From NCBI RefSeq assembly GCF_006345805.1, contig NW_021836129.1, positions 1 to 64,000 of the forward strand: a stretch of DNA of 64,000 nt, read 5' to 3'. A program made the translations under genes and the position numbers. Each line of letters opens with the position of its first letter. The stretch's first letter is position 1. The DNA comes from Octopus sinensis. Its lineage: Eukaryota. Shown here piece after piece: positions 1 to 63,598 of the stretch. The notes under the pieces are model-generated. The model made no database searches and was not told where the DNA came from. It was given only the letters and a program-made list of their open reading frames with translations.

Positions 1-282
1 TACTCTTTCACATTTTCAACGTGTTTATGTGCCAATAATACAATAAGTTGTGCTTTTTTGCTCTATAGTTTGATAGATTTCTATTCTGTTTTTTAATTGA
101 TTTTGATTAAAATAATCATTATTTTTAAAACATTTTTTGAAATAATCAGTTAATTTCAAATTTTCTTATTTCTTAAACCTTTCCAAGTAAACTATATTTT
201 TTCCTTTTCCCTTTTTATTCCACCTCTGATTCATAGATTTTTATTAACGTCTTTTAATGAAATCAATGTTTATTTTGTGTAA

Positions 283-29460: not shown

Positions 29461-30899
29461 AATATAAATATAAATTATAAGTTAAAATACTTTAATTTTT
29501 AATTTAATCTAAATTCAAAGAAATCTCTGAATTTTTAAAATGATTTTTAATATTTTCATAATTTTAAAATTTTATGCTTATCGATATCTTTCGACAATAA
29601 AAACCTGACTTTCAAGGACCAGCACAGTTTGGAGAAGACAATCCCAATATTGAACCGCATACTATGAAAAGATCCCAGTATTGCTTATTTCAGGACATTT
29701 CAGGTCATTGCGAAGGCAGACATCTTCTTTACTCTGCCCCGATTGATCAAGAACATCGTGTTTTTTTATTTGATCATTTCAGTACGTTCGGTTTTTCAGG
29801 CTTAGACTACGACTCGAGTTAGACAGTGCCCACGAACTTTTCTTTTTTGTGAGTGGCAAGCAGGCAGTTTACCTCAATCAAAAACGAGTTGTATTTACTC
29901 GGTATGTTCGTGTGTTTATTGGCATAAATCCAAGGACGAGGACGCATTTCTATATATCACATACGCCAACAAGTTGGTTTCTATGGCCGAAATTGATATT
30001 TAATTTTATTCTTTCTGGTCTCTAATCATTCTGTTTGCATGTGATCTAATTATTTTACCAATTTCTCAATAATATTAATTGGCGATGTGCTTAGTGGTGG
30101 GGCACTCATGTACTCACACTGACATACCAGATTAATCAAAACTAGCTTCATTTATAACAAGCTTCCTTTATAGTTTATATTCAGATTAGTTTACATTTTG
30201 ATTCGAATCAATATAATGCTCATGTTTTGAATTTGTGGAAATATTTTCGCAAATAAATCTGTCAAAAATGTTTTTGTTCTTTTAACTTGCAATTGATTTA
30301 TGATAATTATTAAACCACACTTGGAAAAAAATCGGAGATCATATCGTTAATTTCCATAACGACACATTTAAAGGCCCATTTCCCAGACCAGTGGAATGTC
30401 TCATGATTTCAAGACACCTCTGGCCAACAATAGGAAAGTCGACATTTTTCACTTCCAACAGAAAAAGATCATGGAGTGATAAAAAGTAAGAAAATGAATG
30501 AAATTGATCTACAAATGAACTTTAAGAAATTCTGTTGTCCAAAGTGAGAAGACGGTTGATGACAAGCAGACAAAAAGAGGTTATAACCCCCTTCAATTGC
30601 AGAAAACACTTCCCGGTGGCCAAGAAAGTAGGAGTTTCCTTCACTTACTGAATAACTCAACAAACTAGAACGTTTTAAGGCAGCAAAAAGATCAAAAATT
30701 GGAAATAAACGTGGGAGGATTAGTTAGCCTTCCTCTCTGTCTTGAGTGGAAATGACGAATGTGTAGATGAATTTGGTATAAACGAGCAACTCGGTGAAAA
30801 TGAATGCTAGAAATATCCACGACTAAGGACCGAAGCGATAGCAGGAATCTCTGAAGTGTAAATTGAGACGAAAGTCCAAACGAGTGTAAAAAATAGTCA

Positions 30900-31390
30900 T
30901 TAATATAACACCAAATACACTTTTGGACGACGAAGTGGCTAAGGTGGGTTAAGGACTGTCATTTAGATGTACAACAATGAGATCGACAGTCTGTTGGATG
31001 TATTGGAAGTCGAGAGGGATGGAGATGACTTATACGTGTCCTATGGACTATTTAAGTATTAGGGGCTGCTTATTTATAGTAATCTTAAAAAGCAGCAAGT
31101 GGAACAGTCCGACCGTATGACCGACCTACAAAGTGAAATCATGACATGTGAGGACTTGAAAGAACAGGTTTTTGGACATCATAACTTCTAGAAGAATTAC
31201 TGCTTGCTCTGTCTAAAAGCTCACAGCAAGAACTATTGAGAGAGGTAAAAACTCAGAAGAGCAAAAACCTCTATAGCAACCAGATAGTATTGTTGAAAAG
31301 CGATAGCTGTGACAAGGAACCAATTTTTGGTTATTCTATACGCAAGTTTGTTGATTGTGCTAATTTCGATTGGGGAAGCAATTAATTGAT
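30900..31390 (+). pseudogene. Unidentified intron-containing gene fragment (copy at about 59500-59990)
   Basis: LLDDEVAK|23-nt intron 30944-30966|MYNNEIDSLLDVLEVE..|24-nt intron 31056-31079|NLKKQQVEQ..; frame could not be extended cleanly either way. Confidence 0.45.
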
Positions 31391-31659
31391 GAATAATTTA
31401 ATAGGTTATTATTCGCAATTATTTCCCAAATATTTTATTGAACTTTAATCATGACACAAGTATGCTCACAAATCCGAAATTAATAATTATTTAATGATGG
31501 AATTTTATTATCAGTTCGTTTTCAACGGCATTTCTTCTAGAATTAGTCAGATTAAAGAGATTAAATTTGAGATAACTCAATTTTAAGGAACTAAATAAAA
31601 ATGTACAAATAATTAGCATAATTACACATATATAAAATGAAACTTAACAATGAATAATA

Positions 31660-32710
31660 ATGATTCTGATTGTCCTGTTGATGCTACAATACACATCAAG
31701 TATTATTTTATTGACACCAAATAGGTCCCGGTGAACTGAAGGTGAAGTATGATAAGAATATAGTAATCTATTTTTATTTTAATTCAGATGTTCATGTTGG
31801 ATGCTGTCAAAAATGTTGAATGATTATTTAACTAGCGTAGGCACTGTCACACCTAGTGAATATTTCGTTTGTCAATGAAGGAGAAGATATTTCTGTTGAG
31901 ATTGTTGAGTTTGAACTCCGTGTCAGTCAAATTGTAGTTCAGCTAGTGATGAAGGATATCATGTTATTAATAGAGTTGGAAGATTGAATGTATTCCTTAA
32001 TAGTTCAACGAATGGTTAAGGTAAATATAACACATTTATAGTCGATGGAATGTTTAACGATTCCAAATGTCAAGTATATTCAGTGTTTTAATATAAGCAA
32101 TATAAACCCGGAATTATCATATACAAATTACTCAAAATAATGAATTTTGAAGATATTGATGACCCTGACAGTATTTTAAACCCGGAAAATAAATTGTGGT
32201 CTTTTTATTTGTAATTATAGAAATGTTATCCCAAGTCCAGAATTGAATCAAAAATTCAGAGAATTAAGATTTGAAAGAGAAAGTATTGTTGAGGCATTGA
32301 GACTAAATGAAGAAAATACAAGTGAACACCAAAAAATTAATTTTGAAGATGATGAAAATATTGACAATACAATTGGAAACCAAGAAACTAATTCCGAAGA
32401 TGATGAAAATATTGACGATACGAGTGGAAGCCAAGAAATTAATCCCGAAAATGAAGAAAATACAAACAATACCATTGGAGACCAAGAAATTAATTCTGCA
32501 GCTCAAAACAATACAGTTAGTGGTGCAGAGGTCGGTAAAGGAATCAGGAAAGGTATATTGCTTCTATGTCTTTTCCCTTTTTGGAATAAGGGTGTAATAT
32601 ATAATAGTGGATATGAGTTTTTATTTCATGGCTGGTGCAGTCTTGTGCATGCTAATTCTTCTTTAATCCCAATACTTTTACTAATTCAGGACACAATAAC
32701 TAAATTTTAA
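31660..32710 (+). CDS. Orphan secreted or surface protein with acidic 17-aa repeats and 7 micro-introns
   Basis: Introns 31700-31724, 31763-31787, 31815-31840, 31920-31942, 32015-32041, 32074-32097 and 32196-32220 give one open frame from MILIVLLMLQYTSS into the 32243 ORF; three 51-nt repeats near 32335-32487; TATAAAA about 25 nt upstream. Confidence 0.75.
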
Positions 32711-32851
32711 TTTGGGCCTATCTGTTAAAGACACGTGACTGCTAAGTTTATTTTGAAATGGTGAATTAAGAAAATGATGTCAATCAAACATAGTGTTTTT
32801 TGTGTAATTAAATAAAAGTTTTGATGGTAGGAGATAGTGAGTTATTAAATA

Positions 32852-32998
32852 CAGTCTTACCTTTTTTGGAACGGACCTTGAGGCGTGGAAAACCTCTGTT
32901 TTTGATACATTTTTGAGATTTGGAACATTTCGAAAATTTATAAGAAAATTTATAAAATCCTTACCAAAAAGACCTCATTCCAAACGGAGGTTAGACTG
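32852..32998. mobile_element. 147-bp pogo-type MITE (copy at 61446-61592)
   Basis: Imperfect TIR CAGTCT(T/A)ACCT..TTTGGAA with TA on both sides. Confidence 0.8.
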
Positions 32999-33489
32999 TA
33001 TCCCAATTTTAATGAACTAAATAAAAATCAGAAATACTTCGCTTAATTACACAGATATAAAATGAAACTTTACGCTAAATAATTTTGAATCTGACTGTGC
33101 TGTTGATGCTAAAAAACTTATTAAGAACCTGTTTTCACTAATAAATTTGTATTTTAGATATTTAAGGACTATACATAAGAATATTTCCGAAAAGTGTAAA
33201 ACGTTCTAGAACCTGGAAAAAAGTTATAATAGATTAATTTAAATGAATGATTAATTCTTTGCAATCCTTGGTATATTGGAGTATAGTATCTAATATATAG
33301 TTTTTTGGTGCTTTTCACGTCAAAAGCAAACATTAATGTTGACGCATCAAGTATAATCTCGAAGCTCTAAAAATTAGCTTTAAATCCACAAATAAGCAAG
33401 GATTACAAAAAAATACAAAATCCCTTTCGACAAAGAAAACTGATCGTTGAACATTCAATTAATTGAAAATCTAATAAAGAAATTATCTA

Positions 33490-33764
33490 AATATGCCTCA
33501 ATCCTCATAAGTCGAATACTTTTCTTGAGAAAATCCAGAGATATTGAGAGCAAATCTCGTGGTAATAATTATTCTTACAAATTGAATGATTAACATAAGC
33601 AATATATTTTTGGTTTGGCCAATGATAATCTATCATTGACACTATTAAAGTTAAAAAACATGGTTTTTTCTAAATTTCGGATAAATATTAGTCCGGATGC
33701 TATTAACCAATGTCTTAAAAATTTTCCCTACATGCATCAACACTAATGCTTGATGAGTCAAGAC
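33490..33764 (+). mobile_element. Degenerate IS630/Tc1 transposase remnant interrupted by a hAT
   Basis: SRGNNYSYKL..LTLLKLK..ISPDAINQCL HTH-like segment; LMLDES motif at the hAT insertion site. Confidence 0.5.
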
Positions 33765-34996
33765 CAGGGGTTCTCAACTTTTTTAGCTCATGGGCCAAAT
33801 CGATAATTAAGAATATCTTTGCGGGCCGCACAAAAAATATTTTATGTTATTAATGAAAAGAAGGCTTTATTAAGTAATAAAATCAATGCGAGACTTGATT
33901 CTGTTTGGCGTCTATTATTTTGTCAAAACAGGGAGTAAAAGTCGAACACGATGTGCGTAAAAGTTGATTTAGGTGTCCATCAGTCAATTGATTTCGATAC
34001 TTTGTTTTTATTTGCGTAAGTTTGGTGAAAAGAGCTTCACATGTATACGTTGATCCGAAGACTGATGCATTTTTTGAGCATTATCGACCAAGTTCGGATA
34101 TTTCCACTGTGGAATTCGACCCCAAAAATCCAATAGTTCACTTGACTTAAATAGCGCGGTAAGTTGTAAATCTGCCTGCATTTCAATTAGTTCCAGTTGA
34201 TATATGTATGGAGCGGTTGCAGCATCTGCTTCCATAGGTGACAAAAATATTTTCATAATAGGTAAAGCTTCTTTAAAATCATTAAAACGTGTTTCGAATT
34301 CATCGATTAAGTCACTAATAACGCAGATATATTTTTGTAGGATCCATCTTCCCTGTGATTTGAAAGTATTGGGAAATGAATGGTAACTCTACTTTCAATT
34401 TGTATATTCCAAAGGTGTAGTTTTTCGATAAATGCAGAAACCATTCCGTACAATTCATGACATAGTTTGCCCTTACCCTGCAGAGAAGTATTCAAAATTG
34501 AAAGGTGCGTAGAAATATCTACCATAAATGCTAAATCTGCAATCCACTCCTTATCAGTAAGCTGAGGATAAAATATCTTATTGTCAATAAAATGCATAAT
34601 CTCCGGGAGAAGGTCATAAAATCTAAATGCGATTTAGTTTAAATTTATATAAAGTTTTTAGACATGCTACCCGACTCATATTCAGAAGAATGTTTTGAAT
34701 AATGCCTCTCGACATTATATGTCTTAAGACATCGTATGACAGAATGACTAATTAGGCAATGTACGTTACCATTTTCTTCAAAAACGAAAAATTTTTCCTC
34801 CCATTCGGGGTTAAATGCACGATTTTCATGAATAATTTTCTACTTCGTTTAACACGTTTATCAGACATCACAAACAATATTATTTAAACATTAATGTACA
34901 AAATATTTAATATAAAAACAAAAAATATTTAATATATTTTTATAATTTTAATCGGGCCGCACCAAAATTGTGGCGGGCCGCGGTTGAGAACCGCTG
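33765..34996 (-). mobile_element. Buster-type hAT, internally deleted
   Basis: TIR CAG(G/C)GGTTCTCAAC, perfect TSD GTCAAGAC (33757-33764 and 34997-35004); WIADLAFMVDI and FGSTYTCE motifs. Confidence 0.95.
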
Positions 34997-41615: not shown

Positions 41616-44600
41616 TTAATAGTTCAGAGCGCATAAATAATCTGGCTCTTCCCAACTACATAGATCTATCGAGAAAACAAAGTTGGTGGAATGTCCCGTG
41701 ATGGACAGAGTTCCTACACATTCCTCCACCACATGACTCACCAGCTCTCGTCAGTGTCTTATAAACTGACAAGGAGGCGTCATAATTTTTATTTTCTGTC
41801 GGAATCAGCCAGATTGGTGGCATTTCCACATACAGTTCCTTCGGTCTCGACTCCACTCGACGTCCCCCGTCTCATTGACCCCCCTCCATAAACAAGCCCG
41901 TAATCTAATACCCACTCAAAGGAGGACTGGATATGTCCTCTCCTTCCAACACCTACACTGTGCTCACGGCCATACTTTAAAAGCGAAACTTATTTTATCA
42001 ATTAAAATCACGTTCTTTCGAGCATAGTTTTAGAGAGTTCCCGTCAAGAAAGCCTGCGGAAAAAAGAAACCCGATAAAAAAACAGAGAATACATATTTTT
42101 CCCACATCAAGGCACTCTATTGGTGTACAAACTCTGTGCCATGTCCTTCAACTCCTGGGAAATGACAACCAGTCCTTTGACAGCCTTGAGTAAGTATTCC
42201 AAACACCTTCTAATGACACCAAGAAGACGATTCTAACTGACATATAATATTATCAACTATGGCTTTTTGGATGAGGGAAGTGTTCATTGACTCTTCGTAA
42301 AGGACGGGGTACTTTGAGGATATTTCCACTATGCTGAATTCAAGGGGAAGAATGGCGAAGATATCTCTGACAAGTTTGTCCACAATCTCAATCATAAACT
42401 AATAAACAGACATTTCAGACGAGTCTTCTGGTATTCTGGCACTTTTGTTTTGTGCGAAAGTGATATCTACATTCTCGTGCAGTCCGAATATCTCCGGGCT
42501 ATCATTGATAGGCAGGTCTCTTATATAAGTCAAATACCCCTGGCAACTAAAATCATTAACCTCACTCTGTGGTCCGTCGAAGGATAAGGTTGGAAAAATA
42601 CTCTTGTTTTGGAAAAAGTGTATTTCTCTTCAAAGACACTGTCGCTGTAAGAGTCCACCAGCAAGTAGGCGACTGTCCTTCTGTTCCAGTCGTCGGATAA
42701 GATAACTACATGAAACAAGTTAAAAGAGCAGATTTTTAAACGCAGGAGTCTATTTAAAAAAAAAGGTTAACCAATTTTGAATAATTGAAATAATTAATAA
42801 TAATAAACCTTATTTTGACACGAATTTAAAAATCATCATTTTGAGAAATGTACAATCAGAGGAGATTGGCTTTTATACCCCTGAGAGGCTCAATAGTCAT
42901 TTTGCTGCTATTTTGTAGTAGAAACGTGGAAAATCGAGTACTGGGGGGACTTATGAGCCAAACTCTAAAGTCTGTACACCTGATTTTAAAGTGACCCAAA
43001 ATAACTTTTTCCGGATCCAATTTTTCGATGAGTCTTTCCAACTGAGGCATCCAACTTTGTGCCAAATGACAGTTCTGGAAGACAACCCATTTCCAGTGCT
43101 CAATTTGTTCTCTCATAATCTCTTCGGCCCTCGGGCCTTGTCCTTGTCCAAGGGAAATTGACAAAAGTTTTTTAGAAAAGCGCATTTCCTCCGCGAATTT
43201 GTACAAATCCGCCGCGGGATCAGTTCCAGCCGAAATAATGAAGACGAGAGGAACGAAGGGAGACGAGTCCTTGAAGACCAGACTCAGGTGAGTAGTCTAG
43301 ACCGTTCCGTCACTCAAATTCACCTGAGGCTCGATAAAATGGCTTCCAAGGTTGTTGGAGACGTATTGCTGCATATTCGGGGTTATTTTATCAGACCGAA
43401 GACATTTGAGGACAATCATTTTCTGAAAGTCGTCGGGGGTTTTGTCCCAGAGAGCTGGCAGTGGATGGTTGTTAATAAAACTATAAGATATACTTGTGGG
43501 GATCTGAACTATCAAACTTATATTTATATTCGCAAAAATTGTCAATAAAGTGTTCGACTATTCCTTTAAATGAGTCCAGTGAGGCCAGTCCCTCCAATTT
43601 CTGTCGGAGAGCCAGTCTGGGGCGGGGTTCGGTTTTTGGATAGTCTTTTCGACTGAGCTCAACAGGAAATATCTCCACTCGTTCTAAAACTCGTTGAATT
43701 TTACGAACTCCTTTTATTTCTCCAAAGTTCTGTTTGATTCGTACACAAACGAGTAATCCAAACAAGAGTCTTCCAATTCCTTCCTATTTGAATATTGATT
43801 CGTATTTATATGCCTCATTTGAGCATTATTGACAATCAACTGGTTCTTGGCATCTTCAAGGTCAAAAAGTTCCTCCGTCACGACAATCCGCAATAACTGA
43901 TCCTCGAGGCTTCTAAAACTGATAATGACTTTTATATTGAGGACTGAGGTGGGTCAATAAATAGTGGCCACCGTTTTGAGTTATTGGCGATGAGTGCATT
44001 TTCAATCGAAAAGTTGTCTTTAGGCAGTCCCGTAATTTGCCAATTCCGTATTTTTACCGGGTCCCCCATCGATGTCACGATCTCCGGGCGGTCAGTAATA
44101 GGGACCTTGCACTCAGTAAGGACTTTTAGACATTTCTCGTATAGAATAGCCCGATATTCATGCTTTAATAAAATTATTTAAGTTTTATACCGTGAATGGT
44201 CCCAAATAGGCAATCGACACGGCGGCTATCAAAATATCCCCCACAAAATTTTGTAACGTGTATTCCAAAGTCTCGACAGTCTGTTGCCACCGGGATTTCT
44301 CGCTGCCGAGTCCCCGTACCCATCGATGTAAGGACGTATCTTCCTTATGATGGCTTCGGGGATGTTGTCCTTGTCGTAGGTGAAAAGAGAGTCGATAAAT
44401 TTTTAAGGTTTTTGGAAAGGGTCTTTCCGGGCTCTCAAAAGTCGTCGACCTTGACTTCGGGAATGTAGGTGGGGACTTTTTCAAGCTTGACCACCTTCAT
44501 AATGCACACAGTCTCCATCACAAGTTTGACCCCATCGGGAGGACAGGACATAGCCTTTACTTCGAATACGTCATTCTTGTTGAGGGACTTGAAACTCGAT

Positions 44601-47600
44601 AAGGCGGCACTCTAATCTAAGACGTATTGTCCAACCATGATGAGGAGGGCTTCACTCAGTTCTCGCTGGGTATCATCGGCGATGTTCTGGCACTCATCTG
44701 CCTTTGCACATGCATCAGTTTCTTCCTTCTTTACATGAGCTCTTGTTTCTTCTGCCACTTTCTAGACTTGTTTAATAGCCCTCCTAACTGTGTCTTTCTC
44801 GATTTGGGAAAGCGTTCTGTTGGCTTCGTCCATTGCCTCTTCGAGTTGGGGTCTCAATTCGCTCAGACTTGACTGGAGGACGACAACTTCCTCAGAAGTA
44901 GTCATCAACTGAGATAACTTCCAAACCAATAGTCACCTTATCCAATCCCGTTTTTAGTCTGTTTTTGGCAGATACGACTTGAGATCTCTTGATTCCAAGC
45001 AGGGAAGAAAAAGAGGAGATCAATTCGAGATAACTAGTAGAAGTCACGTAGTTATGATGGTTTATTTCGATCAGGAATTTGTTGGACAGTTCAATCACAT
45101 TTTGGTGGATAAGTCGACAGGATTTTATCTATGACTATTTTATTCAGTCTTTACTATTCCTGAGATTGTTTCTTGGTCGTCTTTCAATTCAGGAAGATCT
45201 GTCAAGAACCTTTCAGCAACTGATTGGTAACCACTGTGTGCAGATTAGTTCTCACTCTCTTGGTGTATATCAAGTATAAATTTGTCTTGGTAGGCTGCAT
45301 CCCCATCTCACTACAAATTGGCTGCATTTGCTGATATATTTTGTCCAATTCTTCATTTCCGTAAAGATTTTGAACATCTCTTGAATTTAAAATGTTGTTG
45401 AGGCTCTCTAGGAATCCTTCGTCTTTGATCTGCCATTGAGGTCTCTTCAAGTCCCAACCTGTGTGTCATTGAAGAGAAACACAATCTGAGTCTCCTTTAG
45501 ATTAGCTTCCATGTTGAACGTGTAGTGCAGGGTGTCAAACATGCGGTCTACAAAAAATCTACAAAAAATTATTTTTTTATTTTTGTTACATTTAATTAAA
45601 CTTTTTAATTGTATTTTTAAATCGTGTTTGTTAATGTCACGTGCTTTTTCTGCAATAATAAAGAAACGATGCTTGAAAGATGAACGGAGAGTGTTTCTAG
45701 ATAAATGAGAACTTTTCTATTTTTACACAAAGGTTGATGGACATTGTTTGATATGTAACAATTTATCGCTATACCGAAAGAACACAACCTAAAGAGGCAT
45801 TATCAATCTAATCATCTATCATACAATTATTTCGAAGGCTGCTTATTAACCAAGAAGGTCCAATGCATGTTTCAAAAGAATTGCGAAAAAATTTATCTGC
45901 GTTACAGACTCATTTCACAAAAAGTCATAATCGAAGTACTGCATTAGTCACTACAAGCTATGAAATCAGCAGAATGCTTGCAGTAAATGGAAAATCATAT
46001 TGTGATGGTAATTTCATCAAGCAATGCCTTCAAAAAACAGCGAATATTATTTGTTCAGACGACGCCCACTTGTTTAAAGATATTTCATTAACAAGAAATA
46101 CTGTTGCCGAACACATTAATGAAATGGCATTGAATTTGAAACAACAATTAAAGTCTGATTTGTAAAAATTCGAATATTTTTCAGTTGCAATCGATGAAAC
46201 AGTTGATGTCGTTGGAATTGCACAATTAGCAATCTTTTTTAGAGCCTGTGATTCAGATTTTAATATTTATGAAGAATTTCTCGAACTGGTACCAATGCAC
46301 GATACTACTACAAGTAAAGATATCTTTATATAACTACTACAAATTCTCTTTGAATATGGGTTTGATTTGAAGAAGCTTGTATGTTTATGCACTGATGGTG
46401 CTCCGAATATGGTTGGACGATATGCTGGCGTTGCCGCCAAATTGCGAGCTAAAATACAAAAGGTAAATCCCGGGTCATCATTTGACAGAGGTCATCCCCT
46501 CAACACCGGCAGTTTAGTAAACTGCTGACAGATATTAATAATCAGTTCAGCGACATTCCTTTTTATACTCCAGTCCGCTGGTTGTCACTTCAGAAAGTTG
46601 TTAAAAATATTTTATTTGTTGAGATCGGAAATCATTTTATTTATGGAAATGAAAGGGCAAAACATAGACGAAATGAAAAGTCAAACTTGGATCAGGAGTA
46701 CTGTTGATGCACATAATGTAATGAATTTTTCTCAGTATGAAAAAAAACTAAAATCGTTGTTAAAGGAATTTCAAGAAAGATTTAATGATTTTTCGTCTTT
46801 TGAACAACAATTTTCATTATTCGCATCACCATTCTCTCTTAATGTTTCCAATGCAGATGAATGTTTATAAAGCTAAAAATTTGGAGGTTAGAATACCTGC
46901 TTTCTTTTCATATCTTCCGGGAAAGTTTAAAAACTTTAAAAAGTTTGCAACAAAAATCATTGCTATGTTTGGTTCGACATATTTGTGTGAACAGCTTTTT
47001 TCTTTTATGAAATTGATAAAAACTGCTCAAAGAACAAGATTAAATGATGAACATTTATCTTCTTTAATAAAAGTCGGAACTAAATGAATAGCTCAGCCTG
47101 ACATATCAAAAATTGTATCTAAAAAAAGATGTCAATCCTCTGGAAGCAGTTCTCACCAAAATTAAAGGGCGATGGTTGAATAATTTAGTTTCTTTTATTT
47201 TGATTATTCATCATTATAAATATCAGAATTAATCTTCCCTTAATGAGAAATTATTATAAATGCGGCCCTCGAAGCGAAATTGACACCTCTGTTGTAAAGA
47301 GTCTTGTTCGGAGTCGGAAGGAAAAAATTGAGGACATTTTGGTATATTTCAATGCATGCCGTAACAATCTGATCTACCTGTCAAAATCGATTTATGCTCA
47401 TCTGAATGATTCATCTTTACTTCTTAACCTGCCCACGTGCGTATGATTGTGCCGAATATGTGGCGGATGCTTGTGTCACTCATTTCCACAAAGGAGACCA
47501 TGTTGAAGCATCTCAAAAACCTCTGCGTCACCGCGTTCCTCCCCCCACCATGAGGACCCATTGCACAACAGAAATTAATGTCAATCAGTTTGCAAAAGTC

Positions 47601-47800
47601 CCCTACACAAAATAGACATAAATGACCGAACCAATCATTTTCCTGTCGTACCAACCTCCGTTTCCGAGACACTGTCGAATTAATTCGATTGGAGTTTGAG
47701 CTCCCCAGATTTCTAGTGCTGGTATATTCAAATCATCAATAAAAAATATTCGTTTTTTCCCCAGAGGAGGGCCGTAGATTCACTTCCGACTGTCTGGGTC
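41616..47800 (-). pseudogene. DNAH1: Axonemal inner-arm dynein heavy chain (DNAH1-like) pseudogene, AAA3 to C-terminus
   Basis: FIDDLN, AMGP.GGGRN, PTPNKTHYTFN, LNNILNS, YLGPFT, SLGQGQGPRAE, QNCHLA.SWMP, KYPVLYEESMNT, YKTLTRAGTLS.TGHSTNF; many 23-29 nt introns; TGA at 44435-44437 where Trp is expected; frameshifts, large internal deletions and a hAT insertion. Confidence 0.92.
45528..47291 (+). mobile_element. Degenerate Buster/GTF2IRD2-type hAT inserted in the dynein pseudogene
   Basis: Ends CAGGGTGTCAAA and TTGACACCTCTG; LTRNTVAE, AIDETVD, CTDGAPNM, RWLS, FGSTYLCEQLFS; stops and deletions. Confidence 0.9.
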
Positions 47801-50617: not shown

Positions 50618-52562
50618 CTACGTACTACTGCTATTCAAACAGGGAATGAAAAAATACAAAAATATATATTGGGCGTCTCTCCTCATGCGGGAATATATAA
50701 TACTCGTTAGAAACTCGTGGTTAACCCCATCCAAGTCAGTATTTAGGGGAAGTGAAGAAGGCTCAGTGGACTGTAAGTAGGCTTGCACTAAAAATAGAAA
50801 AAGAAGGCAAACTGTCACGAGCGTGTTGTTGGATAAATGTGCGAGTTTGTGAAGGTGGAGTCCAACTTGGGTTGTTTCTCTGAAATGTGAGAATAAAAGC
50901 ACCGAAAATGCAAGGAGTGATATTTCGAGTTTATCATGAAGAGTGGTGTGGTCAGGGGGGACATGAAGGAGGGCATAATCCAGCATATCTCCACCTGCGT
51001 GTGTACGGAGAGTATGTTGGCAAACAAAATGTACAAGTCGTGGGATTTGATGTCGAAAAAAGAAGAAAAGAAATAAAGGAGCAGTAAATGGTGCAGCCAC
51101 TTGTTGTATCAAATAAATCTGTAAGTGTTGAATAAGTACAACTAAATGTGATTGAAAGAGGAGTGTAAAATGTCGATAAGTGTGGAGTGGTTGATGTTGG
51201 TCGGGGGAGAAATGATATAAATGGGCTACCAGATGGGGGATAATGTGGTGTGGATTAGTAGTGGTAGACTATGATAAGGAGAGAGAAAACAACCTGTCGA
51301 CTACTAGCAAAGGCATAAACAGCAGCTGGAATATAAATAAACAAAGACAGACTAGTGATGGCAATAGCAGTCACAATTCTGGGGACTTGAAGAATAGTGT
51401 CATGAAGGAGTGTAAGTACAGCAAACAAGAGAAGGACAGCCCCCGCAAAATAAGTAGCATGTCTTGCCAACACACCCACCAATGGAGAAGAAAAACATTG
51501 AATATACTGATTGGCAAAAGGATAGGCCAAAGCAAGTCGTTCCTCCAATTCATGATCCAATTCAGAGTAGTTACGAAGGGAATAGTAAGCAATAGGAGTC
51601 CAGCGGTGTCGAAATATACTGGAAGGAGCCCTACGAATCATCTAAACTAATCAGACAGACATACCTCAGCATATTCGAAGCACACATACAACAGTTGGAC
51701 AACAAACAAGAATGGGGATAAAACTAAGCCAAACAAGCACATCACCACCAACCGTGTTCTAATTCTACCATATTAGAGAAGGCTACGTTCTCTCCGCATA
51801 TTCCCTCAGACCCCCCACTCGGTATATCTCTGCTATACTCACCCTTGTTGAGAATACAGTCCCCTGCACACACGACGGAAATAAGAGCTTAAACAAATAC
51901 AATTCCATCAATTTTGTAAAGCAAGGAATAGATTCAAATTCTCTTATTAGTCCTACCATAAAATTGGTATGTCGGACAATCATGCTGTGGCAAACTTACA
52001 TTATACTTACATTCTTACGTAATTCATCTAGGCCACTGTCCTTCTCCATTAGTCCTCTCTCAATCCTCTCCCATGCAGTCACGTACAGTTCATTCTACCA
52101 TCACATCCACTCACTCACTGAATTTATAGACATATCCTTCAATAATCTCCTCATATTCCACAAATGGGGCAGTCTCCATAATAGAATACATATTTTGACA
52201 ACACTGAATATTCCCACTCCCACCACTACACACATTTCCCCTCTACTACACACTCTCAGACATGACTCCACTGGTAGGAATATGTCTGATATGTTCCCTT
52301 CTTTCATATTCCACCAATCAAAGTCCACACATTTATATACGTACATTACAAACACACACAAAAACACAATTCGTCTATATTCATTTAGTCTTTAGTACAT
52401 TATATTGAATAGTTCGTCCACTATTATGCACCATATTCCTTTCTTTCGGTAGTAGTCGTACACTGAGCTTACCAACCAGTCCCTTTCCGTAGTCGAGAAG
52501 GTCCCACTATTCGATGTGTTCAACAGAGGTTTCGACAAGTCATCCAGATCCACATCATCCAT
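50618..52562 (-). CDS. ATG9: Autophagy protein ATG9, apparently intact, with micro-introns
   Basis: MDDV..VYDYYRKKGIWCI..|..CVDF..IVRHTNFMVGL..RWTPIAYYSLRNYSELDHEL..APFTAPLFL..GGDM..KLEISL..NNPSWTPP; 24-nt introns at 52375-52398, 52095-52118 and 51995-52018. Middle introns and the exact 3' end were not all traced. Confidence 0.9.
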
Positions 52563-53199
52563 TCAAACCTCAATTTTATTTATTACCACCAACCTAACAA
52601 ATATATATATAAATATATTCTTATAATTATATTAAAATACAGGGGTCCTACAACTCGTACATCTTATTAAAGTTGGGTACTTAATCGACCAAGCACAGTC
52701 TGTTCTGTTACATCGACTGGCAATGTTGACTGATATTTTGTTGTCAATAAATAGACGAGACTCCTACGAATTGTCCATGTCAGTTATCTACTCTCTCAGA
52801 ACTAGATTTGGGCTTCAGAGAACGGAATCCAGTGCATAAATGCGTATGACAAAACATTACACATTTATTGACCAAACAAAGACATTCTTAGTTGATTAGT
52901 TACTTTAAACTAAATGGTTTGGAAAATAATTTTGAGAAATCAGCGACAAGTTAGTCTACCCATTTTCATCTTGACAGATAAATAAGTGCAAAGTAATATA
53001 CACCCCTCGACATTAAAATCCAAACAATTAATAAATCGTCATTTTTATTATCAAATTTAGAAAAAAAACCTTTGAGCATAATATTTTTTTCTATATTTTT
53101 AGATTAAAAAAATATATATTTACAAAAGTTTTATAAACGATATTTAAAAGCATAAAACGTGTTTTCAGTGGCGTAAAATTCCGGAGACTTTTGCTATTA

Positions 53200-55079
53200 C
53201 AGTACGACCCCGGTTTGGGGCAGACCCCATGGGTGGGGCACCCTCGGGTTTTGGGGCACCCCCGCTTTTAGGGGCAGTTTTTGAAAACAGTAAATTTTTC
53301 ATTCTATTATTTATTTTTGATGACCCCGGTTTGGGGCACTTATTTAATTTATTTAATTACAAAATGTTAGTTTATTTATTAATTATTAATTAATACTATT
53401 ATTTCACGTGTTTATTTTGACTTTAGTATGGTTCGTAAAAAGAATTCAAAGATTAATTATGAAACAAAAATTAAAATCGCTAAAGATATAAAACATGGTC
53501 AATTTTCAGAAAGAGATCTTGCTAAAAAGTATAAAACGAGCAAAGGTATCTTTTTTAACTAATTATTAATTACAGGTACTATTTCTCGCATTAAACAAAA
53601 TTTTGTTTATTATTTTGACGCGGGATTAACTGAATCCGATAGAATCAAGGAATCACATGATCCAAATAATGAATTAGATAGATTAGTTTTTGAAACTTTT
53701 CTACGTCTGAGAGATGAATTTCTTCCAATTTCTGGAACTATCTTAAAACTGATTGCAAAAAATTATCTAAAAAGATAAATTATGAATCATTTAAGGCATC
53801 AAATGGATGGCTAGACCGGTTCAAGAAAAGACACGAGTTGCTATTTAAAACTATAAGTGGAGAAAAGAATTCATCTGACCTTTCTACGGTTTCCAATTTT
53901 TTTGCTGATTATGACAACTGTTTGGAAACTGTAGGAAGTGAAAATATTTTTAACTGTGATGAAACAGCTTTATACATAAAGCGAACGCCGTCGAAATCTT
54001 TTGTTCAATTTAATGACAAATGCAATGGAATTAAAATGAGCAAAGAGAAAGTTACCCTTCTCCTTTGTTGTAATGCACTTGGTGAAAAGTTAAAACCTCT
54101 ATTAATTGGAAAATTCAAATCTCCTAGGTGTTTAAAAAATTTTAACGCTGAGGATCACGGAGTACTATATGCTGCATCAAAAAATTCGTGGATGACTAGT
54201 GATATTTTTGGGAAATGGTTATGGAAAGTAAATCAAGATATGATCAATGAAAAGAGAAAAATTGTCTTAATACTGGATAATGCGAGCTGTCACAGAAATA
54301 CAGAATATTCCAATGTTTATTTACTTTTTCTTCCCAAAAATACGACCGCTTTAATTCAACCCCTAGATATGGGAATAATAAAATCCTTCAAGTCCCTCTA
54401 TTTCAATAAACTGATTGATTTTACTCTTATATTTGAAAAAGAACAGCTTTCTGATTTGAATTTGAATAATGTCAATCTTAGACAAGTCATTACAGTTGTC
54501 GGGGAGGCATGGAAAATGATGTCAGAGACAACGATAATTAATTGCTGGCAGAAAATAAATGAAAACAGATCAAAAATTTCGGATAATGTACAGTTGGACG
54601 AAGAATTAATAGATGACGTGATTTCAGATGTTATTTCAATGGATTCGACAGATATTATTGAGGACAAAATTACTTATGATGGATATGAATCTAAAAAATC
54701 ATCAATTAAAGAAATCATAAACATCGTGAATTCTCTAGAAGATAATATTTTCAGTACATGTCCACAATTTTTGAAAATCTACTACGAATTTAGAAAAAAC
54801 CTATCAGGAGAACTGAAAAAAAACCAATTCGGTGAGAAAATTACTGATTACTTTTAATAGTATTTTTTGTTGGATTTATTAAAATTTTTAAATTTTATTA
54901 AGAAAGGACTATGTTAGAATTTTTATTAATATTAAATAATTTTAATTTATAGTCTAAAATGCAATAAAAATCTATTGAGGAGAAAATAAAAGCAAAAAAT
55001 CTTTACCCTCGCATTTTGGGGCACCCCCGCTTTTTAGGGCACTATGATAAAAATGCTGCCCCAAACCGGGGTCGTACTG
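53200..55079 (+). mobile_element. Full-length pogo/Tigger element
   Basis: Perfect 24-bp TIR CAGTACGACCCCGGTTTGGGGCAG, TA on both sides. Confidence 0.95.
53428..54857 (+). CDS. pogo transposase (DD29D) with 30-nt intron 53546-53575 and one 1-nt frameshift in an A6 run near 53757-53762
   Basis: MVRKK..TSK|GTISRIK..ASNGWLDRFK..NCDETAL..LDNASCH..QPLDMGII; 466 aa if one A is restored. Confidence 0.85.
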
Positions 55080-57588
55080 TATTACTTAATATATGTAGAT
55101 TTCTATAATGTCTTTAAATAGATGATATTTAAATGTCAATTCTGTTTCTTTAAAACAAATATTTTTCATTTCTATCCACATTGCTTTCAACTTTGTATAT
55201 CTTCTTATCTCATATGAGTATGAGTAAATCTGAATTTTGAGTGAAATCTGATGTTAGTTCTTAAATTTGAATTGTATTTTTGTATCGATGCAAATTCTAA
55301 AAAATTAATTTACTTTGCAACGTTTTTCAAAAATTTTGAATAGATTATATTTACTCATGAAAACATGACCAGAAGTGAAATTAACTGTTTTTGTTTTTAT
55401 AAAGAAATTGAAGTTATAAAAGCTATTAATTATTAAAAGTTATCATTATAAAACATAGAGTTTACCTGCGCCCACCCAATATCATCAAAGTCAAGTTTTC
55501 CTGTCTTTTCGGTCATTTTAGCAATTCGATATTATTTATTTGAAAAAAGCGCTTTACTAGTGCCGAAGTATGTTTCAGATCATTGTCTTGTTGGTAAATA
55601 GGATTTTTAAGTTTGATTTTGTTCAAAATTTTTTCTATCACTATTGTACACGTTAAATTTAGCTTCATTACTAAAAATAACTCCCTCCCAAAAATATTTT
55701 GGGAGCATATTCCTCTCTCAAACACATTTTCTACGACACACCACACAAAGGGCAGTCCCCTTCTACTAAGGACACATGACTCACTGAGGCCACGCCGACA
55801 AAGGACTCCCTCTCTTCTACTTACAACACAAACGGACTCCCCTTCTACTGAGGACACAAGCCTAGAGGTAGGCATTCTATAGAAAAGTTTAGTGCAGACA
55901 TTTAATTAGTTGTTCTCAATGTTTAAACTATTGAATATTATTAATTAATTGATCACCTGGAATTTGAAAGTTTTCCAAACTTTTGATATCTTAAATATGC
56001 AGAATATAAAACTGTTTTGAAGCAAAAATAAAATTATTTTTCCAAATAAATTAACTTTCAGAACTCCCAGCATGTTTATTATTTCAAATTAATTCACACT
56101 TTATTTACTGAATGTAATCAGTGTGTACGTTTTTATAAGTTATGAAATCTAAATCCAAATTTGAGTTGATGGAAGGACTGATCAACAATTCAAGAAATTG
56201 AATGTTTGTGTGTAATGGTCCTAAATACAAATTGGGGATAACTATGCACGTTATTATGCAATGAAAGGGTAAACGACTCGGCAGACTTTGCCCCCAATCT
56301 GGCCGTCAAATTTTCGAGAAATTTATGTCTTGAAATAATAGACCATAGAAGAAAACAAACACGTTGTTCATGTCCCGTCTTGACCAAAACTAGAAAAGTG
56401 TTAAAAAAAAGCTCAATGTGAGATATAAAAACCACAAAAACATCAAGAAAGGCCCGAGACTCCCTTCCCTGTCTAACCTTATCGAGAGACGGATATTCAC
56501 ACACCCAAATTGTAGGCACTAAAGTCGAATAGTAAGATCTTTGTGGGTCATGTTTTATATTCGGGTATGTGTAAGGCCTCTAATGGACTCTGTTTATAGT
56601 CTACCCTGGAGGCTCCTTTAGATTGATGTGTCAAATTGGGGCGGAATCAAATAAGTCGGAGCTGATCAGCTTTACGTAAACGAAATTCGAGTGATCAAGA
56701 GAATCAGTACCATCACTGGATTCGTGTGGACAATAAGTCCACGACGATTGGTATTGATCTTGAAATACGCCAGTCTCCTAGTTGTGTAACTCTGACGGAA
56801 CTTCAAACTCAGTGCTGTAAAGATTTCTTGACATGCATTGCTTGCCGAAAAAATAACACTACATAAGATTGGACTTGTACGGGAAACTCCGGATAGACGT
56901 TGCAATCTTTTGGAGCAAAAGAAAGTTGAACTTTTCCCACTATGTCTAAAATTATTTTCTGTTATGAAAAACTTTCTACAAAACTATAAAAAGTGCACTA
57001 TTAATATTTATAGCACTATTTTATAATCAACTCTTCAATTTGTGAGTTAGATTGAGTCTTTTTTTATGCTTAAATCATGTCCAAAGATTGAGTCTCTTTT
57101 AGACAAAAATTGTGCATGGCCAGCTGATTACACCTTTTGACGTTTAAAAGATCAAAATAAAATTTTTTGATAAAAACGTATTCAAAGCAATTAACGAATC
57201 CGGTCTGTCACTTTACAACTATTATATTGGACTAATCAACATTGAACCACACGAGTTTAAGGATATTTATGTTTATGTTCGACGTATTCTTTATAAGATA
57301 AAACTTTATTTAAACCCTGCAAATATATAAAGACTCTATTTACTAAAAGATAAACTTGGGTGAGAACTTACTTCAATTGTGTTAGTAATTGAATGCATTT
57401 TGTTCAAATTCCTCTATAATCTGAAAAAAAATCTGAAAGAACCTGAAATTCTGTGGGCTTTAAATTTAAAGAAAACACATATAACAATAATCGCGGGATC
57501 TTTAACTCTGAAATAGATGTAAGAAAACTCCAAAAGTTCAAATTAAATGTTTATTGATAAAAATTGACAGTAAATCTCTTTATTGTAT

Positions 57589-57915
57589 GTCACAGTGGCT
57601 GAAGACTAAGCTATGGATAATGGATTTGGACGGTCGTGAGTTCGATTCCGAAGGAGGCTGTTTTTCATCCTGGGGGTAATTCTCGTTATCGTTCCCCTGC
57701 CCGTGAGGCAACGAGTACTTCTGGCACGACACAGTTGGAAATGGGGATCTCTTACCTTCCGGGCTTAGCGTGGCGTTACGGGGTCCACCATGTCAGTTGG
57801 AAATTCCTTCGGATATGGCAACGCTCAGTAGGCACTTAATGCCTACCGAAAGAGGATTCTTAGCTTCTCAGACCCTGGGACATCGTCGTCTCAGGCCGAT
57901 CTTGCGGGAAGGATT
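57589..57915 (+). other. Candidate tRNA-derived SINE or structured RNA
   Basis: A-box-like TGGCTGAAG and B-box GTTCGATTC about 44 nt apart, followed by a GC-rich body with hairpins (TGCC-CGTGA-GGCA; GTAGGCA-CTTAA-TGCCTAC). Confidence 0.4.
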
Positions 57916-60252
57916 GAACCTATCTACAATTTTAAATCTAAACTTTATCTCCGACATTAAATTTGTACTCAGTATTGTGGACATTCATTTTCCCTGAGTT
58001 TATATTAATCGGATTTATATTAAATATAATTTTTTTCGACTAAGACAATTAAAATCGTCTAAATATAAATTATAAATTAAAATACTTTAATTTTTAATTT
58101 AATCTAAATTTAAAGAAATCTCTGAATTTTCAAAATTATTTTTAATATTTTCATAATTTTAAAATTTTACGCTTATCCTTCGATATTCTTCGACAATAAA
58201 AACCTGACCTTCAAGGACCAGCACAGTTTGGAGAAGACAATCCCAATATTTAACCGCATACTGTGAAAAGATCCCAGTATTGCTTATTTCAGGACATTTC
58301 AGGTCATTGTGGAGGCAGACATCTTCTTTACTCTGCCCCGATTGACCAAGAACATCGTGTTTTTTTATTTGATCATTTCAGTACGTTCGGTTTTTCAGAC
58401 TTAGACTACGACTCGAGTTAGACACTGCCCACGAACTTTTCTTTTTTGTGAGTGGCAAGCAGGCAGTCTACCTCAATCAAAAATGAGTTGTCTGTACTCG
58501 GTTTGTGCGTGTGTCTATTGGCAGAAATACAAAGACAAGGACAGATTTCTATATATCACATACGCCAACAAGTTGGTTTCTATGGCCGAAATTGATATTT
58601 AACCTATTCTTTTTTGTCTCTAATCATTCTGTTAGCATGTGATCTAATTATTTTACCAATTTCTCAAAAATATTGATTGGCGATGTGCTTAGTGGAGGGC
58701 ACTCATGTACTCACACTGACACACCAGATTAATCAAAACTAGCTTCATTTATAACAAGCTTCCTTTATAGTTTATATTCAGATTAGTTTACATTTTGATT
58801 CGAGTCAATATAATGCTCATGTTTTGAATTTGTGGAAATATTTTCGCAAATAAATCTGTCAAAAATGTTTTTGTTCTTTTAACTTGCAATTGATTTATGA
58901 TAATTATTAAACCACACTTGGAAAAAAATCGGAGATCATATCGTTAATTTCCATAACGACACATTTAAAGGCCCATTTCCCAGACCAGTGGAATGTCTCA
59001 TGATTTCAAAACACCTCTGGCCAACAATAGGAAAGTCGACATTTTTCACTTCCAACAGAAAAAGATCATGGAGTGATAAAAAGTAAGAAAATGAATGAAA
59101 TTGATCTACAAATGAACTTTAAGAAATTCTGTTGTCCAAAGTGAGAAGACGGTTGATGACAAGCAAACAAAAAGAGGTTATAACCCCCTTCAATTGCAGA
59201 AAACACTTCCCGGTGGCCAAGAAAGTAGGAGTTTCCTTCACTTACTGAATAACTCAACAAACTAGAACGTTTTAAGGCAGCAAAAAGATCAAAAATTGGA
59301 AATAAACGTGGGAGGATTAGTTAGCCTTCCTCTCTGTCTTGAGTGGAAATGACGAATGTGTAGATGAATTTGGTATAAACGAGCAACTCGGTGAAAATGA
59401 ATGCTAGAAATATCCACGACTAAGGACCGAAGCGATAGCAGGAATCTCTGAAGTGTAAATTGAGACGAAAGTCCAAACGAGTGTAAAAAATAGTCATTAA
59501 TATAACACCAAATACACTTTTGGACGACGAAGTGGCTAAGGTGGGTTAAGGACTGTCATTTAGATGTACAACAATGAGATCGACAGTCTGTTGGATGTAT
59601 TGGAAGTCGAGAGGGATGGAGATGACTTATACGTGTCCTATGGACTATTTAAGTATTAGGGGCTGCTTATTTATAGTAATCTTGAAAAGCAGCAAGTGGA
59701 ACAGTCCGACCGTATGACCGACCTACAAAGTGAAATCACGACATGTGAGGAATTGAAAGAACAGGTTTTTGGACATCATTACTTCAAGAAGAATTACTGC
59801 TTGCTCAGTCTAAAAGCTAACAGCAAGAACTATTGAGAGAGGTCAAAACTCAGAAGAGCAAAAACCTCTATAGCAACCAGATAGTATTGTTGAAAAGCGA
59901 TGACAAGGAACCAATTTTTTGTTTATTCTATAAGCAAGTTTGTTGATTGTGCTAATTTCGATTGGGGAAGCAATTAATTGATGAATAATTTAATAGGTTA
60001 TTATTCGCAATTATTTCCCAAATATTTTTATTGAACTTTAATCATGGCACAAGTATGCTCACAAATCCTAAATTAATAATTATTAAATAATGGAATTTTA
60101 TTATCAGTTCGTTTTCAACGGCATTTCTGCTAGAATTAGTCAGATTAGAGAGATTAAATTTGAGATAACTCAATTTTAAGGAACTAAATAAAAATGTACA
60201 AATAATTAGCATAATTACACAGATATAAAATGAAACTTAACAATGAATAATA

Positions 60253-61303
60253 ATGATTCTGATTGTCCTGTTGATGCTACAATACACATCAAGTATTATT
60301 TTATTGACACCAAATAGGTCCCGGTGAACTGAAGGTGAAGTATGATAAGAATAGAGTAATCTATTTTTATTTTAATTCAGATGTTCATGTTGGATGCTGT
60401 CAAAAATGTTGAATGATTATTTAACTAGCGTAGGCACTGTCACACCTAGTGAATATTTCGTTTGTCAATGAAGGAGAAGATATTTCTGTTGAGATTGTTG
60501 AGTTTGAACTCTATGTCAATCAAATTGTAGTTCAGCTAGTGATGAAGGATATCATGTTATTAATAGAGTTGGAAGATTGAATGTATTCCTTAATAGTTCA
60601 ACGAATGGTTAAGGTAAATATAACACATTTATAGTCGATGGAATGTTTAACGATTCCAAATGTCAAGTATATTCAGTGTTTTAATATAAGCAATATAAAC
60701 CCGGAATTATCATATACAAATTACTCAAAATAATGAATTTTGAAGATATTGATGACCCTGACAGTATTTTAAACCCGGAAAATAAATTGTGGTCTTTTTA
60801 TTTGTAATTATAGAAATGTTATCCCAAGTCCAGAATTGAATCAAAGATTCAGAGAATTAAGATTTGAAAGAGAAAGTATTGTTGAGGCATTGAGACTAAA
60901 TGAAGAAAATACAAGTGAACACCAAAAAACTAATTTTGAAGATGATGAAAATATTGACAATACAATTGGAAACCAAGAAACTAATTCCGAAGATGATGAA
61001 AATATTGACAATACGAGTGGAAGCCAAGAAATTAATCCCGAAAATGAAGAAAATACAAACAATACCATTGGAGACCAAGAAATTAATTCTGCAGCTCAAA
61101 ACAATACAGTTAGTGGTGCAGAGGTCGGTAAAGGAATCAGGAAAGGTATATTGCTTTTATGTCCCTTCCCTTTTTGGAATAAGGGTGTAATATATAATAG
61201 TGGATATGAGTTTTTATTTCATGGCTGGTGCAGTCTTGTGCATGCTGATTCTTCTTTAATCCCGATACTTTTACTAATTCAGGACACAATAACTAAATTT
61301 TAA
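60253..61303 (+). pseudogene. Duplicate of the 31660 secreted-protein gene with a lost splice donor
   Basis: Intron-4 donor GT is AT at 60513; the next GT (60515) would shift the frame. Confidence 0.6.
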
Positions 61304-62357
61304 TTTGGGCCTATCTGTTAAAGACACGTGACTGCTAAGTTTATTTTGAAATGGCAAATTAAGAAAATGATGTCAATCAAGCATAGTGTTTGTTTGTGTA
61401 ATTAAATAAAAGTTTTGATGGTAGGAGATAGTGAGTTATTAAATACAGTCTTACCTTTTTTGGAACGGACCTTGAGGCGTGGAAAACCTCTGTTTTTGAT
61501 ACATTTTTGAGATTTGGAACATTTCGAAAATTTATAAGAAAATTTATAAAATCCTTACCAAAAAGACCTCATTCCAAACGGAGGTTAGACTGTATCCCAA
61601 TTTTAATGAACTAAATAAAAATCAGAAATACTTCGCTTAATTACACAGATATAAAATGAAACTTTACGCTAAATAATTTTGAATCTGACTGTGCTGTTGA
61701 TGCTAAAAAACTTATTAAGAACCTGTTTTCACTAATAAATTTGTATTTTAGATATTTAAGGACTATACATAAGAATATTTCCGAAAAGTGTAAAACGTTC
61801 TAGAACCTGGAAAAAAGTTATAATAGATTAATTTAAATGAATGATTAATTCTTTGCAATCCTTGGTATATTGGAGTATAGTATCTAATATATAGTTTTTT
61901 GGTGCTTTTCACGTCAAAAGCAAACATTAATGTTGACGCATCAAGTATAATCTCGAAGCTCTAAAAATTAGCTTTAAATCCACAAATAAGCAAGGATTAC
62001 AAAAAATACAAAATCCCTTTCGACAAAGAAAACTGATCGTTGAACATTCAATTAATGGAAAATCTAATAAAGAAATTATCTAAATATGCCTCAATCCTCA
62101 TAAGTCGAATACTTTTCTTGAGAAAATCCAGAGATATTGAGAGCAAATCTCGTGGTGATAATTATTCTTACAAATTGAATGATTAACATAAGCAATATAT
62201 TTTTGGTTTGGCCAATGATAATCTATCATTGACACTATTAAAGTTAAAAAACATGGTTTTTTCTAAATTTCGGATAAATATTAGTCCGGATGCTATTAAC
62301 CAATGTCTTAAAAATTTTCCCTACATGCATCAACACTAATGCTTGATGAGTCAAGAC

Positions 62358-63598
62358 CAGGGGTTCTCAACTTTTTTAGCTCATGGGCCAAATCGATAAT
62401 TAAGAATATCTTTACGGGCCGCACAAAAAATATTTTATGTTATTAATGAAAAGAAGGCTTTATTAAGTAATAAAAATCAATGCGAGACTTGATTCTGTTT
62501 GGCGTCTATTATTTTGTCAAAACAGGGAGTAAAAGTCGAACACGATGTGCGTAAAAGTTGATTTAGGTGTCCATCAGTCAATCGATTTCGATACTTTGTT
62601 TTTATTTGCGTAAGTTTGGTGAAAAGAGCTTCACATGTATACGTTGATCCGAAGACTGATGCATTTTTTTGAGCATTATCGACCAAGTTCGGATATTTCC
62701 ACTGTGGAATTCGACCCCAAAAATCCAATAGTTCACTTGACTTAAATAGCGCGGTAAGTTGTAAATCTGCCTGCATTTCAATTAGTTCCAGTTGATATAT
62801 GTATGGAGCGGTTGCAGCATCTGCTTCCATAGGTGACAAAAATATTTTCATAATAGGTAAAGCTTCTTTAAAATCATTAAAACGTGTTTCGAATTCATCG
62901 ATTAAGTCACTAATAACGCAGATATATTTTTGTAGGATCCATCTTCCCTGTGATTTGAAAGTATTGGGAAATGAATGGTAACTCTACTTTCAATTTGTAT
63001 ATTCCAAAGGTGTAGTTTTTCGATAAATGCAGAAACCATTCCGTACAATTCATGACATAGTTTGCCCTTACCCTGCAAAGAAGTATTCAAAATTGAAAGG
63101 TGCGTAGAAATATCTACCATAAATGCTAAATCTGCAATCCACTCCTTATCAGTAAGCTGAGGATAAAATATCTTATTGTCAATAAAATGCATAATCTCCG
63201 GGAGAAGGTCATAAAATCTAAATGCGATTTAGTTTAAATTTATATAACCTTTTTAGACATGCTGCCCGACTCAACCATCGTACAGTTGTATGCATAAGCA
63301 AATCTCCATACTTGGCGTCAACATCCTCGAGAAATATCTTGAAATTCCGATGATTTAAAGCACGGGATCGAATAAAATTTACGATCGAAATGACCGTTTC
63401 TGTAACATGGTCCATTTTCATAGATTTCGCGGATAAATTTTCTTGATGCAGGATGCAGTGATGCCAAATCACAGGACTCAACTCATCATCTACTCGCCAT
63501 CCAGCTACGAGACCTTGAAACCCAGTTTTCCATCCAACCATAGAAGGACATCCATCTGTAGCAATTGAAAACATTTTTAAAGGATTCAAATGTGCCAT
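62358..63598 (-). mobile_element. Buster-type hAT (longer copy of 33765 element) with 31-nt intron 63218-63248; 5' end not present
   Basis: ATDGCPSM..HCILHQE..RALNHRNF..VRWLSRAACLKR|intron|FYDLLPEIMHF..WIADLAF..FGSTYTCE; shared frameshift near 62940. Confidence 0.9.

Follow-up and report, generated by a model that had tools for sequence, protein, structure and literature searches.

The pogo/Tigger element at positions 53200-55079 of the window, as we call the whole 64,000-nucleotide stretch of Octopus sinensis assembly DNA that was analysed, carries within its transposase gene a 30-nt segment that is most likely a genuine U2-type spliceosomal intron, whose splicing we infer from the comparison of sequences. 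Our reading as a whole, to which we give a probability of roughly three in four, is that this is a real intron of normal size for a dicyemid-type host, gained once before the split of two related transposon families.

The element is complete. Its left terminal inverted repeat (CAGTACGACCCCGGTTTGGGGCAG, 53200-53223, + strand) pairs with a right repeat at 55056-55079 (- strand), with 24 of 24 positions matching by self-BLAST (26 of 26 including the TA), and the two are bordered by unstranded TA target-site duplications at 53198-53199 and 55080-55081. Perfect 24-bp repeats with TA on both sides are found in the window copy and in four other full copies, the flanks of these remaining copies being unrelated. 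The transposase is encoded on the + strand in two exons. Exon 1 (53428-53545) translates as MVRKK...KYKTSK plus the first base of a Gly codon and holds the first two helices of an N-terminal HTH, while exon 2 (53576-54857) runs from GTISRIK to the stop and encodes HTH_Tnp_Tc5 and DDE_1 domains. In Pfam searches with the element product, the CENP-B/Tc5-type HTH (HTH_Tnp_Tc5) is matched at E=3.2e-7 and DDE_1 (PF03184) at E=4.1e-39 over its full 177-position profile; the catalytic domain is assigned by this domain-level match, and the first, N-terminal HTH is recognised by alignment to relatives alone. DDE_1, the CENP-B/Tc5-type HTH, short terminal inverted repeats and the TA duplication are all shared with pogo/Tigger, the pogo superfamily of IS630-Tc1-mariner (Gao 2020, PMC7386202), and place the element in that group.

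A segmental duplication has its left edge exactly at the right TA duplication. Large intra-window duplications of 96.6-98.2% identity relate 27384-34678 to 55080-63273, and also 2-3247 to 15677-18955; the 55080-63273 copy begins exactly at the pogo right end (55079/55080), and the sequences to the left of 27384-34678 and 55080-63273 are unrelated. This edge may stem from a rearrangement at the transposon, from the loss of a second element, or from an assembly chimera created across the repeat.

The putative intron occupies 53546-53575 on the + strand (30 nt, GT..AG, phase 1) and contains an in-frame TAA. Across it the sequence reads ...aaa acg agc aaa g / GTATCTTTTTTAACTAATTATTAATTACAG / gt act att tct cgc att aaa, so that GTATCTTTTTTAACTAATTATTAATTACAG splits the ..KTSK and GTISRIK.. 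codons of an ORF that starts at 53428 (MVRKK...AKKYKTSK) and resumes after the segment as GTISRIKQNF...; its removal restores colinearity with intronless relatives. The preliminary description of this DNA had reported such a break, TSK / 30 nt / GTISRIK, and its junction is exact, with exon 1 ending at 53545 and exon 2 starting at 53576. Within the N-terminal HTH, the site separates helix 2 from the presumed recognition helix (...SERDLAKKYKTSK / GTISRIK...), a placement taken from alignment to relatives and not from a structure. Reading of an unspliced mRNA would stop after 44 residues, and the next downstream Met lies inside the catalytic domain. Therefore, given the in-frame stop in the segment and the lack of a Met before the catalytic domain, a functional DNA-binding transposase needs splicing. 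P-element-type regulation by intron retention also features an early interruption and a stop, and retention here would yield a 44-residue truncated peptide; the likeness is pure analogy.

Five further copies of the family are found on four contigs of GCA_006345805.1 by BLAST of the DNA behind matching protein models, which were identified from 100%-identical protein matches labelled 'tigger transposable element-derived protein 6-like [Octopus sinensis]'. These copies are 99.1-99.8% identical to that of the window, and the segment is present in all six recovered copies, at different TA sites. As such, near-identical copies that occupy different TA sites and all carry the segment reveal a family that is young, recently mobile and moved with the segment in place, although the >99% likeness of the copies gives no information on selection within it. 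One copy has a 29-nt segment in which a T-run is one T shorter, a variant that is harmless only if the segment is removed. Without its 30 nt, copy L004 is an uninterrupted 467-codon ORF (467 aa) from ATG to stop. The window copy has in addition an A6 run at 53757-53762 (+ strand) that shifts the frame, where three other copies have A7; this is either a private 1-nt deletion or an assembly error, and the preliminary description was right that one missing A is the only other defect of the window copy. The survey covers seven loci, and an intronless master copy may exist elsewhere in the genome. At L002:2706-6466 two family copies lie head to tail, with the last ~425 bp of the first inverted and abutting the start of the second, which is a nested or rearranged insertion.

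The NCBI models at loci L001-L007 (P0001, P0003, P0004, P0123, P0127 and P0128) never use the tiny intron. Some omit coding sequence so that a longer intron can be called, others begin out of frame or run the transposase together with exons of a neighbouring retroelement; on P0003, Gnomon joins the donor of the tiny intron to an acceptor lying 88 nt further on, and 21 codons are thereby deleted.

A sister family (P0003/P0128), with 57-63% amino acid identity and 67.5% DNA identity to that of the window (~33% diverged), is interrupted at the same place. Its junction reads ...gat aag tac aaa att agt aaa g / GTTTTTTATTAATGTAAGTTTTTAG / gc gct gtg tca cgt att aaa, where GTTTTTTATTAATGTAAGTTTTTAG is a 25-nt GT..AG segment found at two loci (L003 2839-2863; L007); the Gly codon is the same one and is again split behind its first base, in phase 1. 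Since 25 is not a multiple of 3, the 386-codon downstream ORF of the sister family is in frame with exon 1 only after excision. Between the two families pN is 0.28 and pS 0.66-0.83, and for exon 1 alone Ka/Ks is ~0.22, so that the coding sequence upstream of the intron is under protein-level constraint. The 30-nt and 25-nt segments have in common only a low-complexity, AT-rich likeness. Conserved position and phase, drifted length and sequence, retained GT..AG ends and constraint on both exons together form the comparative signature of a spliced intron.

The properties by which a U2-type intron is recognised are found at this locus: GT..AG ends flank a segment whose removal leaves an ORF colinear with intronless homologues, position and phase are kept across diverged lineages while sequence and length drift, and both length and signals lie inside the range of the host spliceosome. 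Searching the protein collection with the transposase returned no spliced protein or cDNA of the window pogo family and no high-identity Logan or transcript matches. The 30-mer, which the preliminary description proposed to seek elsewhere, is present once in the window when as many as 3 mismatches are tolerated (0 expected) and otherwise only in copies of the window pogo family among the fetched loci. Across the window and these loci it is thus confined to one transposon family and does not show the spread of an introner. A ciliate-type IES, with a TA inside each flanking AGGTA, was also considered and rejected, as the ends do not fit an IES-like consensus.

Maximum-likelihood tree building with 31 transposases groups the two families that have the intron in a single clade (support 100/97). 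The intron is absent from 28 other sequences of the tree, and the compared part of the L005 copy does not reach the site. Nearest to the intron clade, with moderate support (86/57), is the intronless ORF P0002 from Logan assembly ERR3671687; next comes a clade of the window 20.6-kb family C, family D (L006) and the L005 copy, followed by Dictyocoela, a microsporidian, and other outgroups. In families C and D the reading frame crosses the site unbroken, and alignment to relatives shows no insertion at SK/G in outgroup proteins. One gain on the branch ancestral to the window and sister families, before their split, is favoured over loss, because a single gain stands against three or more exact excisions. 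The comparison of families by intron presence that the preliminary description called for thus returns one gain, with every other sampled lineage lacking the intron. Its claim of intron gain stands to the extent that the tree favours gain over loss, but the event is older than was claimed, as it predates the family and the site is shared by all copies and by the sister.

The sequences with which the 53200 element had been compared, family C at 19832-20613 (- strand; intronless at the homologous site as TSKGTIFRIK) and a degenerate remnant at 24368-24529 (- strand) with GTVSRIK, are indeed uninterrupted, the 20.6-kb copy reading MYNTSKGTIFRIKK, unbroken, across the site. They had been called paralogs; with 38-51% amino acid and about 65% DNA identity to the 53200 element, they are to be regarded as other pogo families and not as copies of the 53200 family. 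Outside this genome, the nearest named pogo relatives are from Dictyocoela muelleri and Cucumispora dikerogammari, microsporidia of amphipods, at 43-53% amino acid identity, which may be a hint that pogo elements of one lineage circulate in parasites of invertebrates, both marine and freshwater.

Three other accounts of the segment have to be weighed against a single ancestral gain. An intron ancestral to the pogo clade and repeatedly lost draws some strength from the modest value of some supports outside the clade of the two families, and from the chance that introns are purged in the organisms from which the outgroup proteins come; it would require at least three exact losses (in P0002, in the C/D/L005 clade, and in the microsporidian and other outgroups), zero outgroup proteins carry an insertion at SK/G, and we consider it unlikely. 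Slightly less probable still is that the segment is a dead 30-bp insertion, never spliced, in a non-autonomous family that is mobilised in trans by an intronless relative. Splicing is deduced from sequence comparison, the window copy is also frameshifted and other pogo families do reside in the same genome, all of which would suit such a history. Against it, the segment is carried by 6/6 copies, one of them with an otherwise perfect ORF; a family whose DNA differs by ~33% has the corresponding codon interrupted by a GT..AG segment of another length, its two exons still open and constrained; and the coexisting families are at most 63% identical in amino acids and have different TIRs, which makes cross-mobilisation unlikely. 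Independent gains by the two families at the same proto-splice site would account for introns that differ in length and share only AT-rich low complexity, and AAR/GGN does resemble the classical MAG/R proto-splice site. Yet one event more simply accounts for introns that share codon and phase in sister lineages, and unconstrained AT-rich sequence of 25-30 nt is expected to be unrecognisable at pS above 0.66, so that parallel gain appears quite improbable.

Under the favoured reading of a single gain, the intron would have entered a K/G (AAR/GGN) proto-splice-like site in the common ancestor of both families and would then have drifted in sequence and length (30 vs 25 nt). Models of intron gain include tandem duplication of an AGGT-containing exon segment and the insertion of filler DNA at a repaired break. 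AG/GT at both junctions and a site in a conserved exon with AAR/GGN fit either model. The duplication model, however, expects intron ends that copy the flanking exon, and the pogo intron has no such likeness beyond AGGTA: no exon-derived sequence is found inside it past this motif, comparison by eye giving AT-rich matches of 8/14 and 5/13. AGGTA is present at 53544-53548 and again at 53574-53578, as the preliminary description had noted in support of duplication or end joining. The repeat is splice consensus and not evidence of mechanism, since three of its five bases are fixed by AG/G and the Gly codon, the bases common to both junctions in the sister family are AGG only, and there is no further exon likeness. 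A small filler insertion at a repaired break, removable at once by permissive GTa...AG splicing, would be the likeliest and most economical origin.

The length of the intron is best read against host genes of the window, a context that the preliminary description had omitted. A DNAH1-like axonemal dynein gene or pseudogene lies at 41650-47732 (- strand), with GT..AG introns at 45458-45430 (29 nt), 44936-44909 (28), 44788-44762 (27), 44635-44612 (24) and 44190-44163 (28) and a GC..AG candidate at 43813-43784 (30). Removal of its 28-, 27- and 24-nt introns gives 201 aa that align gap-free to human DNAH1 2778-2978 (E=3.7e-56), and among dyneins metazoan DNAH1 comes first (E-56), other dynein paralogues and protist dyneins scoring E-40 or weaker; the spliced piece has one match in the protein collection, at 56%. 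The gene has TGA in frame in place of an expected Trp (at about 44437-44435), a 1-nt A-run frameshift about 40 nt downstream and a hAT-like insertion at about 45.8-47.1 kb. Relative to the dynein consensus it also appears to lack long conserved stretches, after ...TNLH, in part of the stalk coiled coil and in part of AAA5. Either the gene is a pseudogene or this stretch is badly assembled.

About five kilobases away, an ATG9 gene identified by Pfam (51269-52562, - strand) has introns at 52398-52375 (24 nt), 52118-52095 (24), 52018-51995 (24), 51786-51765 (22) and 51664-51642 (23). All five junctions are gap-free against human ATG9A (E=7e-35), with which the gene is open and colinear over its first ~385 residues. 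It is very divergent, its best relatives in the protein collection being 24% identical. The intron finder is a crude dynamic programming procedure; evidence is limited to the junctions confirmed by alignment to the human proteins, eight in total and gap-free (three in DNAH1 and five in ATG9A), and its output past ATG9 residue ~385 is left out. In the two genes we catalogue eleven host introns, 22-30 nt in length. Because these neighbouring introns have the same size range and the same minimal GTa...AG signals, the 30- and 25-nt pogo introns are ordinary here. We likewise set aside an ordinary octopus host with one exceptional 30-nt intron, as its DNAH1-like and ATG9 neighbours show introns of the same size.

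Other transposons of the window vary in structure. A hAT-like transposase gene at 63637-62478 (- strand) becomes a 364-codon ORF upon removal of 31 nt (63248-63218) and 35 nt (62982-62948), so that a second transposon superfamily probably carries GT..AG introns of 31 and 35 nt, as judged by ORF continuity only. At 13450-14577 (+ strand) an intact 375-codon Tc1/mariner-type (DDE_3) ORF is intronless, and its exact product is not on record in the public collection.

Dicyemids are kidney parasites of octopuses, and the host of D. japonicum is O. sinensis; ultra-short spliceosomal introns of Dicyema were reportedly described by Ogino in 2010. Introns of Dicyema are 22-30 nt long and GT..AG, with GTa at the 5' end, no polypyrimidine tract and A's upstream of AG (Lu 2019, PMC6736024; Zverkov 2019, PMC6543705; Hadjez 2026, PMC13644364), a pattern that is matched by the pogo intron and by 10 of the 11 host introns of the window, one DNAH1 candidate starting with GC. 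In dicyemids the median intron is 27 bp and two thirds are <30 bp (PMC6543705), splice signals are reduced to GTa...AG (PMC13644364), and the genome has 36.7% GC and 49% repeats (PMC6736024). Introns below about 30 nt are considered absent in most animals and, within the animals, are known only in Dicyema and myxobolids (PMC13644364). In the window, introns are mostly <30 bp with GTa...AG, as in the dicyemid descriptions (PMC6543705, PMC13644364), and a ciliated metazoan is indicated by the axonemal DNAH1-like gene together with standard stop codons. Standard stop codons, and a dynein nearest to DNAH1 of metazoans, led us to reject a ciliate host. To our knowledge myxozoans have no cilia, and the axonemal dynein thus argues against a myxozoan. 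The extreme divergence of ATG9 would fit a fast-evolving lineage and not a mollusc. On the basis of intron size, gene content and association with the octopus assembly, the window and the contigs of the other copies are most likely dicyemid-type DNA, probably parasite contigs within the octopus assembly. Rfam and tRNA scans of the window returned nothing usable for host identity, and a search of the literature found no report of dicyemid contamination of the O. sinensis assembly.

The alternative is that the window is true octopus chromosomal DNA, into which the tiny-intron genes and the pogo families entered from a parasite by horizontal transfer, leaving the intron as a donor relic. Every named database match is annotated Octopus sinensis, on contigs of 41-552 kb, and the decay of the DNAH1-like gene (TGA, frameshift and missing segments) is what a transferred gene would show. 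Weighing more heavily on the other side, at least two adjacent host genes and several TE families over 64 kb are all in tiny-intron style, and the reading frame of ATG9 stays open and follows human ATG9A for the initial ~385 residues. The protein clusters of the matches have zero members from O. vulgaris or O. bimaculoides, despite an O. vulgaris / O. sinensis divergence of 2.5 Mya. From young copies with >99% identity we conclude that transposition is ongoing; it depends on the splicing of 30-nt introns, and such splicing would be unexpected in a mollusc. The O. sinensis assembly, moreover, is rich in unplaced sequence (13,516 scaffolds, with only 86% of sequence in chromosomes) and in duplicated BUSCOs (5.2%, vs 0.4-0.5% in two Octopus relatives and 1.9% in Amphioctopus fangsiao). 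Octopus chromosomal DNA is therefore a very unlikely source, and the claim that tiny-intron genes and active pogo families are physically in the Octopus sinensis germline is more doubtful still; if true, much dicyemid DNA in one block, its transposons still mobile, would have passed from a kidney parasite to its cephalopod host.

The single intron of Drosophila pogo measures about 55 nt, on an unrelated length scale. Surveys of pogo elements treat their transposases as single ORFs, and in the text of the main one the word 'intron' never occurs (PMC7386202). The published Dicyema introns are in cellular genes at conserved ancestral positions, whereas here an intron of that type lies in a transposase and is apparently newly gained. 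While ultra-short dicyemid introns and pogo elements are both already known, an intron-bearing pogo clade in a tiny-intron genome, with its gain phylogenetically polarised, is new. In such a genome a 30-nt intron is of moderate interest and far less exceptional than it would be in an ordinary animal.

For users of the assembly, the 'tigger transposable element-derived protein 6-like [Octopus sinensis]' proteins of RefSeq and UniProt would come from contigs of parasite type, to extrapolate from the window, and analyses of octopus gene families, TEs and horizontal transfer that use GCA_006345805.1 may be contaminated. Standard gene callers forbid introns <30 nt and therefore mis-model tiny-intron loci. 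For the biology of this lineage, the element offers a cleanly polarised intron gain in animals where gains are thought rare, within a transposase that is intolerant of the unspliced stop. It suggests that introns arise de novo with ease where the spliceosome asks for hardly more than GTa...AG, and that the transposons of this genome adopt the extreme intron style of their host, as the hAT-like gene also appears to do.
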